From Camelus ferus (lineage: Eukaryota): a DNA stretch of 64,000 nt. Location of the stretch: positions 12,028,001 through 12,092,000 of the forward strand of contig NC_045711.1 in assembly GCF_009834535.1 (NCBI RefSeq), given 5' to 3'. Under the pieces are notes generated by a model. That model was not told where the DNA came from. It did not search any database and was given only the letters and a program-made list of their open reading frames with translations. Of this stretch, positions 8,070-38,611 are shown in pieces (positions within the stretch are counted from its first letter, which is position 1; each line of letters opens with the position of its first letter). A program made the translations under genes and the position numbers.

Positions 8070-8282
8070 NNNNNNNNNNNNNNNNNNNNNNNNNNNNNNN
8101 NNNNNNNNNNNNNNNNNNNNNNNNNNNNNNNNNNNNNNNNNNNNNNNNNNNNNNNNNNNNNNNNNNNNNNNNNNNNNNNNNNNNNNNNNNNNNNNNNNNN
8201 NNNNNNNNNNNNNNNNNNNNNNNNNNNNNNNNNNNNNNNNNNNNNNNNNNNNNNNNNNNNNNNNNNNNNNNNNNNNNNNNNN
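8070..8282. other. Assembly gap (213 N) in the FXR2 3' UTR
   Basis: Run of N immediately after the FXR2 stop codon. Confidence 0.99.
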
Positions 8283-15542: not shown

Positions 15543-15706
15543 NNNNNNNNNNNNNNNNNNNNNNNNNNNNNNNNNNNNNNNNNNNNNNNNNNNNNNNNNN
15601 NNNNNNNNNNNNNNNNNNNNNNNNNNNNNNNNNNNNNNNNNNNNNNNNNNNNNNNNNNNNNNNNNNNNNNNNNNNNNNNNNNNNNNNNNNNNNNNNNNNN
15701 NNNNNN
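15543..15706. other. Assembly gap (164 N), inferred to hide FXR2 exon 2
   Basis: Exon 2 (GFVKDVHEDSVTIFFENN-like) is not found elsewhere. A minus-strand pyrimidine tract (TGTCACTTTCT) runs into the gap, and the spacing from exon 3 fits a short intron 2. Confidence 0.8.
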
Positions 15707-21073: not shown

Positions 21074-21509
21074 NNNNNNNNNNNNNNNNNNNNNNNNNNN
21101 NNNNNNNNNNNNNNNNNNNNNNNNNNNNNNNNNNNNNNNNNNNNNNNNNNNNNNNNNNNNNNNNNNNNNNNNNNNNNNNNNNNNNNNNNNNNNNNNNNNN
21201 NNNNNNNNNNNNNNNNNNNNNCGGGNNNNNNNNNNNNNNNNNNNNNNNNNNNNNNNNNNNNNNNNNNNNNNNNNNNNNNNNNNNNNNNNNNNNNNNNNNN
21301 NNNNNNNNNNNNNNNNNNNNNNNNNNNNNNNNNNNNNNNNNNNNNNNNNNNNNNNNNNNNNNNNNNNNNNNNNNNNNNNNNNNNNNNNNNNNNNNNNNNN
21401 NNNNNNNNNNNNNNNNNNNNNNNNNNNNNNNNNNNNNNNNNNNNNNNNNNNNNNNNNNNNNNNNNNNNNNNNNNNNNNNNNNNNNNNNNNNNNNNNNNNN
21501 NNNNNNNNN
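21074..21509. other. Assembly gap (with a 4-nt CGGG island at 21222-21225), inferred to hide FXR2 coding exon 1
   Basis: N run inside the FXR2 CpG island, flanked by promoter/5' UTR-like sequence; no FXR2 start codon is visible outside it. Confidence 0.8.
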
Positions 21510-29394: not shown

Positions 29395-29465
29395 AGGGGC
29401 CAAAGGGTCAGTGGCCCTGTCTCCTGCCTTCCTTCTTACCCCTGAGGCAACCTTTAACCCTCCAC
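29395..29465 (+). promoter_or_regulatory. SHBG proximal promoter: nuclear-receptor direct-repeat element and TATA-like HNF4A site
   Basis: GGGGCCAAAGGGTCA at about 29396-29410 and CCTTTAACCC at 29451-29460, in the positions of the human SHBG footprints (recalled). Confidence 0.55.
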
Positions 29466-29542
29466 CAACCATGTGTGAGGCTGCCTGCCCCCATGCTTTC
29501 TCCCCAGAGCTGTCTGAGGCACAGAGAGGACCAAGGCTGATA

Positions 29543-32382
29543 ATGGAGAGCAGAGGTCCACTGGCCACATGGCATGGGCTGCTTCTGCTGCTGCCGCTGA
29601 TGCCTCCTAGCCACGCAGGAAGGGCCCTGAGACACACTGTCCCCAGCCAGGTGCAGGGGCAGGACAGGGTGCTCAGCCCCATCTGTGTTTAAATGAGCTA
29701 CTCTTCGGCTCTGCCCTGTTCCTTTCTTTCCTCCCCTGGCCTTGTAGCAGTGCCTCTCCTTCCCTCCCTCTGTCTCCGGCATGTCCTTATTTCAGCTTGT
29801 TTGTTTTCTATCTCTGACAGAGGACTCAGGACCCTCCTGCTCTACACCTCAGCAATGGCCCAGGACAAGAGCCTGTCACCATCATGACCTTCAACCTCAC
29901 CAAGATCACAAAGTATGGGGTTGACCTAATTCCTTGACCTAGTCCCCTGACCTCACCCTCTCTCCATCATCTCCTTTCTTTTCCATTTCTCCCTGCCCTT
30001 CTCTCTCCCTGAAGTCCACCTCCCTCAACCTCACATCTACCATCAAAGGGCACACCCCATACCCAGTCCTTCTGTGTCCTTCCAGAACCTCCTCTTCCTA
30101 TGAGTTTCGCACCTGGGATCCAGAGGGAGTGATTTTTTATGGTGATACCAACCCAAAGGATGACTGGTTTGTGCTGGGACTTTGGGATGGCAGGCCTGAG
30201 GTCCAGCTTCACAATCACTGGGCCCAGCTTACAGTGGTCATCGGACCCTGGCTGGATGATGGGAGGTGGCACCAGGTAAGCCAGATCTAGTCCTGAGAGA
30301 GGGGTGTCTTGAGCTGGTCTGCGGAAGGGAACAGAACCAAGTTACTGGGTATCCTTTTACCATTGTCATCTCATTGAATCCACATAAAAGCCCCATGGAG
30401 CTGCTATTCTTGTCCCCATTTTTTTCAAAGAGGAATTCTGAGGCTTAGTATGTAAGTGACAAGTCCCAAGTGAGCTAGTGACGTTAGCTGACTCGTCAAG
30501 TACGTGTTCTTTCTGCCATACAAAGCTGCCTCTGAAGAAAGTGGTGAAGGCAGGCCTCAGGGGTCCTGGTTCTGCTTCTCTTTTCCTTCCTGCAGTTAGA
30601 AGTGAAGATCCATAGAGACTCTGTGCTGCTGGGGTGGATGGGGAGGAGGTGCTGCCTGCGTCTGAGACAGGTCTCTGGGCCTCTGGCCTACAAACCCCAG
30701 CCCATCATGAGGATTGCGGTGGGGAGGCTGTTGTTCCCTGCCTCCAACCTCTGGTTACCGGTAACTGCATCACAGGAGTAACCAAAGCTGGTAAAGCTCT
30801 GCTGGCTGGGTGGCCATGGGGGTCTAAGTCCACACTTCACGGAGAGGGGATGGGGTGAGTGCTGCATGGGGGGAGGCCAAATACTTGTGTCTTGGAGGGG
30901 AATAAGCTGAGGGTGGAGAGGCTGGGACTAGGGCTCAGATGTCCTGATTCCAGCATCCCCACATCTTCCCTTTCCCCCATGGGCTCCAACTGGTCCCTGC
31001 CCTGGATGGCTGCCTGCGCCAGCATGACTGGCTGGACCAACAGGCCCAGAGCTCAGCATCTGTCCCCACTGGCCTCAGAAGCTGCTCCGTAGAGTCCCAA
31101 CCTGGGATATTCTTCCCTCCAGGGACTGGTGCAGAACGCAGTCTTCAAGGTAAAGGCCATCTTTCTCTCCATGACCAGCTTGTGTCCATTTCCCTCCACC
31201 ACTAGCCTCTTCCATCCACAAATACCCAACCTTGAGACCTCAGGAAGATCATTTCTCCCCCACCCCCAGACATTCCCCAGCCTCATGTAGAGCCCTGGGC
31301 CTTCTCCCTGGACCTGGGACTCCAGCTAGCAGCAGGCTCAGGCCCTCTCCTTGCCCTTGGGACCCCAGAAAACCCTACTCGGCTCAGCCTTCACCTCCAA
31401 GATCAAGTAAGAGAGGGATGCTTCCTGTATATGCTGGAGCCTGGAAGCAGTGGGAGAAAAGGGGACTCCAAGAAGTCAGTACTAGGAAAGCTTAAGGGTA
31501 GGGGTTGGGGGATGGGGGGCCTGCAGAGACACATGTTGAAGCTGCCTACACCAAGCAAATGGCTTTTACTTAAGATTGTATATTTACTTGGGACTTGGGG
31601 TGGGTGTGGTTTTATAGAAGGCCAAGCCAGGAGAATGGAGGCAGGATCGAGGTGGTGGGAATGGCCAGTAATTAGACTGTGTGGCTAAGAGGCAGAATTG
31701 AGGCAGCCAGAGTGGGACCACAAGGTTCACTCTTTCCTTCCCAACTTGTGTCCCTTCCAATATACTCTGCATAAGGTGGTACTGTCTTCTGGGTCGGAGC
31801 CAGGGCTGGACCTGCCCCTGGTCTTGGGACTCCCTCTTCAGCTGAATCTGACTGTGTCCAGGGTGGTTTTGAGCCAGGGGCCAAAGAAGGAGATGCTTAC
31901 TCTGCCTCCTGTGGGTCCTGGCTCCCTCTTCAACCTTTGGGCCCAGCTGCAGGGGCATCTCTTCCTGGGGGCTTTGCCAGGTAAGAAAGTGATGTCCACG
32001 TTTCTCAGCACACCACTGGAAACAGCTAAGGGGAGGGGAGAAGATGGGAAGGGGTGCATTTTTAGGGGAAGGAAACCTCTGGGAGGGAAGAGGAAAAGGC
32101 TACAAGAAGAGAGAGGGTAAGCGGGCAGTGGGAGGAAATGCTTTCAAAAATTTAGGTTGGAGAACTGGAAAAGCAGGGAGGAGCTTCTGGATCCAAGCCA
32201 CCCTAATGTCCCCTCAATGCTACCTCCCTCTAGGAGAGGCCTCTTCTGCCTCCTTTTGCTTGGATGGCCTTTGGGCACAAGGCCAGAGGCTGGACATGGA
32301 CCGGGCCTTGAGCAGAAACCAGGACATCTGGACTCACAGCTGTCCTCAGAGCCCAAGCAATGGCACTGACACCACCTATTAA
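29543..32382 (+). pseudogene. SHBG: Sex hormone-binding globulin locus with disabling-type lesions (candidate unitary pseudogene or splice-rescued gene)
   Basis: Exon homologs 29543-29650, 29821-29912, 30086-30275, 30596-30760, 30990-31149, 31270-31406, 31773-31980, 32234-32382. Exon 4 has a -1/+4 compensated frameshift; the exon 5 acceptor is AA (30988-30989); the exon 7 acceptor is AT (31771-31772). Gene identity is secure ([26 protein letters not shown]); pseudogene status is inferred. Confidence 0.7.
30340..30500 (-). mobile_element. MIR remnant in SHBG intron 3
   Basis: CTCATTGAATCCACATAAAAGCCCC...CCCCATTTTT...GAGGAATTCTGAGGCTTAG matches the reverse MIR core. Confidence 0.6.
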
Positions 32383-38471: not shown

Positions 38472-38611
38472 NNNNNNNNNNNNNNNNNNNNNNNNNNNNN
38501 NNNNNNNNNNNNNNNNNNNNNNNNNNNNNNNNNNNNNNNNNNNNNNNNNNNNNNNNNNNNNNNNNNNNNNNNNNNNNNNNNNNNNNNNNNNNNNNNNNNN
38601 NNNNNNNNNNN
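38472..38611. other. Assembly gap (140 N), inferred to hide ATP1B2 coding exon 1
   Basis: The 112-nt coding part (MVIQKEKKSCG...) is not visible elsewhere; the gap lies at the end of the GC-rich 5' UTR and is large enough to contain it. Confidence 0.8.

Follow-up and report, generated by a model that had tools for sequence, protein, structure and literature searches.

The SHBG locus in Camelus ferus

We analysed a 64,000-nucleotide stretch of the Camelus ferus genome (assembly GCF_009834535.1, contig NC_045711.1, positions 12,028,001 to 12,092,000 of the forward strand; hereafter the window), in which the gene for the sex-steroid carrier SHBG occupies positions 29543-32382 of the plus strand. 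The model rebuilt from the sequence has 8 exons, with 1209 nucleotides (nt) and 402 codons, and its frame is open throughout, with no internal stop before the TAA at 32380-82, as the initial annotation of the window had stated. All seven donors are GT, and five of the seven acceptors are AG.

Exon 1 (29543-29650), which is intact in the window, provides the ATG and a Leu-rich signal peptide, and exon 2 (29821-29912) has canonical AG/GT boundaries and holds the internal Met with which the NCBI alpaca model begins. The core of the first laminin-G (LG) domain is encoded by exon 3 (30086-30275), which matches Pfam Laminin_G_1 (E = 1.4e-17) and human SHBG 1d2s (E = 4e-36, with 56/63 residues, or 89%, identical). 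Exon 4 (30596-30760) measures 165 nt, compared with 162 nt in whale, dolphin, oryx and bat. The orthologous exon 5 (30990-31149) completes the first LG domain and adds the linker, exon 6 (31270-31406) has canonical splice sites, the orthologous exon 7 (31773-31980) has an effective start that is probably at 31776, and exon 8 (32234-32382) ends in a TAA (32380-82) that lies within an ATTAAA motif.

The product of this model equals Camelus ferus XP_006175875.2 save for one Lys, and is 75-83% identical to other mammalian SHBG proteins. The number of exons and their phases match those of five other mammals, a SAT2-like acetyltransferase gene (PF00583) lies upstream on the minus strand at the camel, alpaca, oryx, dolphin and fox loci, and the flanks of the dromedary gene match the window at 99.5%. 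These comparisons identify the gene as the true SHBG orthologue of a Bactrian-type camel, adjoining SAT2. It resembles mammalian SHBG, or androgen-binding protein (human; PDB 1d2s, 1kdk, 6pya), in its 8 exons, its SAT2 neighbour and its two LG domains. In contrast to these, it carries an out-of-frame V-D-G turn with one additional residue, has lost the acceptors of exons 5 and 7, and has the private replacements F206R and G145R.

A compensated frameshift in exon 4

To place these features, we compared the window with the SHBG loci of dromedary (GCA_036321535.1, L001), Vicugna pacos (GCA_048564905.1, L002) and C. bactrianus (GCA_048773025.1, L003), and with five outgroup loci from minke whale, dolphin, oryx, horseshoe bat and arctic fox (L004-L008). 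The loci were reached through NCBI proteins from a homology search, and the polarity of each character was set by site-by-site comparison with the outgroups and by branch models.

The nucleotide alignment to the five non-camelids bears out the two indels reported in the initial annotation. One G is missing from the G-run at 30631-34, and CTGC is duplicated in tandem at 30652-59, 22 nt downstream of the lost G. The net change of the -1/+4 pair is +3 nt, so that one codon is gained and the frame is restored. As in other compensated frameshifts, the indel lengths sum to a multiple of 3, the two events are closely spaced and the frame is regained. Between them lie eight out-of-frame codons (30632-30655, plus strand), which read GWMGRRCC in all four camelid assemblies and supply two new cysteines. 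Where human SHBG (1kdk) reads SVLL-EVDGEE-V-LRLRQ, the camel protein reads SVLL-GWMGRRCC-LRLRQ, and the segment stands for the consensus G/E-V-D-G-E-E-V of the non-camelid alignment. We scored the conservation of sites among 43 non-camelid mammals, and on this scale the displaced residues include Val116 (41/43), Asp117 (42/43) and Glu120 (39/43). In the bat model (of moderate confidence) the residues equivalent to the frameshift segment correspond to a turn together with the adjoining ends of the two strands that it connects (142-147 and 150-156).

The NCBI models of dromedary, wild camel and alpaca (P0265, P0266 and P0267) start in a different frame of exon 3 (window 30086-30655) and rejoin the expected sequence just past the frameshift segment, which implies an odd internal intron that skips the out-of-frame stretch.

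Two lost acceptors and the remaining splice choices

The two destroyed AG acceptors of the initial annotation were also found, at exactly the same coordinates. The acceptor of exon 5 (30988-30989, plus strand) reads AA and that of exon 7 (31771-31772, plus strand) reads AT, in both cases in all four camelid assemblies, and both are AG in all five outgroups.

For exon 7, a replacement AG lies 3 nt downstream (31774-31775, plus strand), in frame and at the cost of one Lys codon. The boundary has changed from CAG|AAG|G to CAT-AAG|G, which at the sequence level is a tandem (NAGNAG-like) acceptor, and the AAG|G was there beforehand and is shared with oryx and bat. In every NCBI camelid model the Lys is missing (LQDQ-VVLSS), in keeping with use of the downstream AG.

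The alternatives for exon 5 are more costly. An AG at 30952-30953 (plus strand) would add 36 nt, or 12 codons, with no stop; it lies 5-6 nt past the best branch-point-like sequence (CTGAT, 30943-48), with a weak pyrimidine tract, and on these grounds would be poorly placed as an acceptor. None of the NCBI models retrieved uses it. Downstream, the first AG (31021-31022, plus strand) would remove 33 nt (11 codons) in frame, and the second (31042-31043, plus strand) 54 nt (18 codons), also in frame; reading of the sequence between 30990 and 31021 revealed no other AG. Both downstream choices delete Cys164 and the D-G-C-L motif, and in the bat model (moderate confidence) the D-x-C-L motif falls within strand 194-197. 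The AG at 31042-43 is taken by the NCBI dromedary isoform X2 (P0261) and by the alpaca isoform X1 (P0232, with an exon 5 of 106 nt). The X1 models of Camelus retain the old exon 5 boundary, which requires an AA acceptor, and an AG-only splice mapper found no placement for them. Each lost acceptor thus has in-frame alternative AGs and the frameshift is compensated, and a clear stop-creating deletion is found only in the alpaca.

Camelid SHBG transcripts were sought in two ways. The 90% identity cluster of the camel protein contained NCBI and UniRef models only, and the run-assembly hits of a short-query search were read-through open reading frames of other species, with no camelid transcript contigs. 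A-to-I editing of the AA into an acceptor was also considered and is unsupported, since the predicted RNA fold is about as stable as that of shuffled sequences (z = -0.44) and contains no long duplex.

Distribution and age of the lesions

The four structural lesions (-1, +4, AA and AT) are base-for-base identical in the four camelid sequences, and all five outgroups have the ancestral state, with five Gs, a single CTGC and CAG at both acceptors. Lesions that are shared by camels and alpaca predate crown Camelidae, and this distribution places their origin on the Camelidae stem, before the camel/llama split, which is usually placed some 16-25 million years before the present. The initial annotation had offered either a young unitary pseudogene or a gene whose frame was kept open by successive rescues, in one lineage. 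Neither the youth nor the restriction to one lineage holds: the lesions are common to C. ferus/bactrianus, C. dromedarius and Vicugna pacos.

The same identity across separate assemblies disposes of the possibility, raised in the initial annotation, that the lesions are sequencing or assembly artefacts of the window genome. We found nothing in favour of this explanation, and the four lesions recur with the same bases in the dromedary (GCA_036321535.1), Bactrian (GCA_048773025.1) and alpaca (GCA_048564905.1) assemblies. For these four, an artefact is scarcely credible, and the explanation survives only for the alpaca deletion described next.

In the alpaca assembly, 32 nt are deleted from exon 1, so that the sequence continues as TGG-TCC-TAG and terminates at codon 12; the missing stretch includes the hydrophobic core of the signal peptide. 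An in-frame ATG further upstream gives no rescue. Plasma SHBG owes its signal peptide to exon 1 (PMC2973947); the NCBI alpaca models have none, and P0232 starts at the exon 2 Met. The same Met, Met30, is the start of human transcripts with alternative first exons (TU-1A and TU-1B), whose products likewise have no signal peptide (PMC2973947). Unlike in human, the exon 2 Met would be the sole start in alpaca, where exon 1 is broken.

Amino-acid replacements

The initial annotation listed many radical changes relative to human SHBG. The residues themselves are present, and alignment to 1d2s and 1kdk reproduces the motifs GLWDG, GPWLD, VGRLLF and NLWLP, but their distribution reduces the weight of several of them. 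R72W (Arg in 43/43) and R94W (34/43) are found only in Camelus, the alpaca keeping Arg at both positions, and G109R (Gly in 32/43) only in the Bactrian camels. R154W (37/43) is common to all camelids, and Trp is also found in dolphin. The Trp to Arg change of exon 6 (Trp in 35/43) likewise occurs in all camelids, with Arg in three other mammals. Loss of the N351 sequon, given as a further lesion, does not hold as one, because the sequon is also missing in all five aligned non-camelid Laurasiatherians. Since these changes are either shared with relatives or confined to Camelus, a comparison with human alone inflated the list, and in a fast-evolving protein such as SHBG it overstates decay.

The changes that are private to camelids and common to all of them are G145R (Gly in 39/43) and F206R (Phe in 43/43). 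F44Y and S353N also fall on positions that are invariant in the 43 mammals. Camelus in addition has replacements of its own at conserved Arg residues, namely R72W, at an invariant site, R94W and R318H.

Rates of evolution

Rates were estimated with our own implementation of a GY94/F3x4 codon branch model, in which each class of branches has one omega (the ratio of nonsynonymous to synonymous rates, dN/dS), uniform across sites. The alignment comprised 9 taxa, four of them camelid, and 402 codons, with the frameshift segment masked. Omega is 0.47 for the background, 0.51 for the camelid stem and 0.56 for the camelid crown. SHBG evolves fast in general, with a background omega of 0.4-0.47. For the crown alone, omega = 1 gives p = 0.13, with a profile interval of about 0.27-1.2, derived from about 30 substitutions. 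Within Camelus we counted about 6 nonsynonymous and 2 synonymous changes (omega 1.35, not significant).

The positions of the replacements were also compared with the rates of the sites on which they fall. The 16 camelid-variable sites and 9 camelid-private fixed sites are slower-evolving than the corresponding sites in six control clades, and uniform scatter fits them (P = 0.11 and 0.60) better than a rate-weighted distribution (P = 0.022 and 0.002).

Camel and alpaca SHBG differ by only about 2%. A random substitution creates a stop with a probability of 0.039, so that the chance of escaping one altogether is 0.58 along the lineage from the crown node to C. ferus and 0.31 when all crown branches are taken together. 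The open frame is therefore weak evidence either way, as it would be expected even under neutrality. The ratio of exon to intron divergence was tried as a neutrality test and rejected; it is about 1 in camelids (camel-alpaca, 0.0212 vs 0.0208), yet it is 1.08 between minke whale and dolphin.

AlphaFold2, run with the same shallow 46-row alignment, gave a poor model for camel, with a mean predicted local distance difference test (pLDDT) score of 37.5 and a predicted template modelling (pTM) score of 0.28, compared with 63.7 and 0.50 for horseshoe bat, a heuristic comparison. The drop in pLDDT spans both LG domains, including the little-changed second one, and may reflect only the distance between the query and the alignment.

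Possible erosion or remodelling of camelid SHBG

On this evidence camelid SHBG appears to be either slowly dying or remodelled, rather than a young pseudogene. The interpretation we put forward, with the chances about evenly poised, is that canonical secreted SHBG is impaired in camelids and that the gene is eroding slowly under weakened constraint. The four structural lesions entered on the Camelidae stem and passed to camels and alpaca, and the ancestral mRNA is now out of reach of standard splicing. Exon 7 would begin 3 nt later and lose one Lys, which is probably harmless. With its old boundary deprived of the AG, exon 5 would be spliced at one of the downstream AGs, dropping the 11 or 18 codons that form the last beta-strand of the steroid-binding LG domain, together with Cys164, and in the conserved V-D-G turn eight residues are swapped for out-of-frame sequence. 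As the lesions preserve the frame and the stem omega is normal, the gene would have been under selection while most of them arose. The alpaca would be further along, having lost its signal-peptide exon, and the frame of Camelus would still be open mainly because few mutations have accumulated (about 2% between camel and alpaca). We infer a compromised carrier and weakened constraint from the loss of the exon 5 acceptor, the replaced V-D-G turn, the break in alpaca and the scatter of replacements. The lesions, the species in which they fall and the rate estimates are direct results, and the choice of acceptor in vivo and the loss of function are inferred. Signs that SHBG can be dispensed with are found elsewhere, as the gene is missing in birds and omega is 0.84 in whales.

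Several observations weigh against this interpretation. For the camelids overall, an omega of 0.53 is indistinguishable from the 0.47 of the background (p = 0.65), and neutrality (omega = 1) is rejected both for all camelid branches (p = 0.007) and for the stem (p = 0.027). When whales are given a class of their own (omega 0.84), the background falls to 0.40 and the camelid value is 0.535 (p = 0.26 vs background), with omega = 1 again rejected (p = 0.008). An omega near 1, as expected for a pseudogene after inactivation, is thus not what the camelids overall display. With 16 nonsynonymous to 13 synonymous changes, the crown leans in the direction of constraint (0.07 in a one-sided binomial test). 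The camel deviates at 7 of the positions on which at least 95% of 44 mammals agree, compared with 11 in pika, 10 in tree shrew and 8 in hedgehog, and is no outlier. In the site-rate test the control clades also fall somewhat below the rate-weighted expectation and the camelid excess is borderline (z about 1.5), and the exon/intron ratio is uninformative because the minke-dolphin control is also near 1. If the gene had been neutral, the chance that all four stem lesions kept the frame would be, by a rough estimate, about 1/27. The alpaca deletion is known from one assembly only.

Much of the gene is also intact in camelids, including the promoter block, the ATG, the ATTAAA at the stop, all donors and five acceptors. 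The promoter block, which an alignment of 9 species reveals to be undamaged, contains a conserved DR1-like (direct repeat 1-like) element, GGGGCCAAAGGGTCA (29396-29410, plus strand, about 135 nt upstream of the ATG), which we presume to be the promoter's HNF4 site. Relative to 1d2s and 1kdk, the camel gene has kept the residues that contact the ligand (Ser42, Asp65, Phe67, Asn82 and Met139) as well as the codons for all four Cys, as the initial annotation had noted; the roles that we assign to residues at the dimer interface, the calcium site and the Cys164-Cys188 pair are presumed. The decay proposed in the initial annotation is upheld in part, by the alpaca exon 1 deletion, the 18-codon loss in the canonically spliced NCBI models and the changes at invariant sites, and is opposed by an omega of 0.53 against 0.47, with omega = 1 rejected, and by the lack of excess at conserved sites. 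In the branch dN/dS comparison, which it had suggested as a check, omega = 1 is rejected for the camelids overall (0.53), and the crown interval (about 0.27-1.2) includes 1.

The rival explanation, to which we tentatively give somewhat less than an even chance, is that SHBG has been remodelled and is still functional. The gene would have been under purifying selection since the lesions arose, and compensation of the frameshift would reflect a need to keep the frame. At exon 7 the acceptor would have slid by 3 nt, and exon 5 would be joined through the upstream AG (adding 12 residues), through the AA, or as a shortened exon. An omega equal to the background, both on the stem (0.51) and in the crown (0.56), and the rejection of omega = 1 overall are in line with this, as are the frame-preserving nature of every lesion, with the two indels just 22 nt apart, the open frame in three Camelus species, the intact contact residues, Cys codons, promoter block and other splice sites, and a number of conserved-site changes no higher than in other long-branch mammals. 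On this view the deletion in alpaca would represent a loss in that lineage, a polymorphism or an assembly error, or would be bypassed by an alternative first exon and the exon 2 Met, for which the Met30 start of human alternative-first-exon transcripts (PMC2973947) offers a parallel in the NCBI alpaca model. Against a functional product, AA is not a normal U2-type acceptor and no RNA duplex for A-to-I editing is predicted (z = -0.44), the upstream AG adjoins the likely branch point and has a weak pyrimidine tract, and the canonical AG options remove a core strand and Cys164. In addition, the near-invariant Val116 and Asp117 are gone, exon 1 is broken in alpaca, searches of the protein collection yielded no camelid transcript contigs, and the crown omega interval takes in 1. 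A more specific version, possible in our view with the balance somewhat against it, is that camelids have kept, throughout the history of the family, a SHBG with a rebuilt steroid-binding domain, on which purifying selection has acted in the ordinary way (omega about 0.5). Such a protein would combine an out-of-frame beta-hairpin and two new cysteines with a shifted exon 7 and either a 12-residue insertion at exon 5 or the loss of the strand and Cys164. If true, it would be a natural experiment in what the laminin-G steroid pocket tolerates, or a change of function.

It is improbable, in our judgement, that the loss is confined to the llama/alpaca lineage, with a functional SHBG in the camelid ancestor and in Camelus to this day. 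The sole unambiguous disabling mutation, the 32-nt deletion with its stop at codon 12, is indeed found in alpaca alone, and the Camelus frames are open. Against such a restricted loss, the most threatening lesions, namely the lost acceptor of exon 5 and the out-of-frame stretch of exon 4, are common to all camelids, Camelus has R72W, R94W and R318H and a ratio of 6 nonsynonymous to 2 synonymous changes within the genus, and the deletion comes from a single alpaca assembly. The crown data, about 30 substitutions, are too few to decide between these readings.

Comparison with known systems

SHBG (Shbga) is reported to be conserved in all vertebrates except birds and to be present in 99/99 mammal genomes examined (bioRxiv 10.1101/2020.07.02.184432); in birds, which have no SHBG, CBG binds the sex steroids instead (bioRxiv 10.1101/2020.07.02.184432; PMC12571615). 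Birds are thus a precedent for a lineage without SHBG. They lack the whole gene, unlike camelids, which retain a syntenic, open and promoter-bearing copy with a normal omega. Our search of the literature on camelid SHBG, SHBG pseudogenes and SHBG gene loss found nothing relevant beyond birds.

Like the unitary pseudogenes recovered in gene-loss screens, camelid SHBG has clade-shared mutations of the splice-site and frameshift types in a single-copy orthologue, with an extra deletion in alpaca. Unlike them, it has no shared premature stop or uncompensated frameshift and its omega is not raised, so that the usual marks of a unitary pseudogene are absent in Camelus. The -1/+4 pair, 22 nt apart, and the acceptor moved by 3 nt resemble the compensated frameshifts and NAGNAG-type shifts of functional genes; in contrast to those cases, camelid SHBG has also lost the exon 5 acceptor, with no equivalent AG nearby. 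On the reading that we prefer, it would be a lineage-specific erosion of a dispensable gene.

How much testosterone and oestradiol circulates free is set by SHBG, which in the testis takes the form of androgen-binding protein. In camelids ovulation is induced, and the males have a marked rut. Should SHBG be disabled or altered in these animals, their free-hormone dynamics would be unlike those of cattle or sheep, and total-hormone assays and kits designed around the human protein would mislead when applied to camels, llamas or alpacas. In evolutionary terms, the gene would be either at an early stage of loss, in a lineage that mutates slowly, or a rare survivor of a compensated frameshift and two splice-site losses.

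SHBG in other mammals and further features of the locus

In cetaceans (Balaenoptera acutorostrata, L004, and Delphinus delphis, L006) SHBG has an omega of 0.84, compared with 0.40 for the background, and omega = 1 is not rejected. The whale-variable sites also scatter toward conserved positions, and the dolphin protein, whose normal stop is lost, is 8 residues longer and has changes that include K-L-W-L-R and L-R-A-Q. Constraint on SHBG may thus be relaxed in cetaceans. Among the matches listed in two full-length searches there is no full-length Sus scrofa SHBG; the only pig entry among them is P0284, a UniRef 'uncharacterized protein' of 182 amino acids, modelled as a read-through of intron 4 into exons 5-6.

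A further ATG of the camel gene, in frame and 24 codons ahead of the usual start (window 29471-29542), gives an N-terminal extension. It is adopted in the NCBI C. bactrianus model P0264, and the oryx model P0161 has the same feature. If used, this extension would bury the signal peptide. Runs of N are found in the window at 8070-8282, 15543-15706, 21074-21509 and 38472-38611, and none of them overlaps SHBG.

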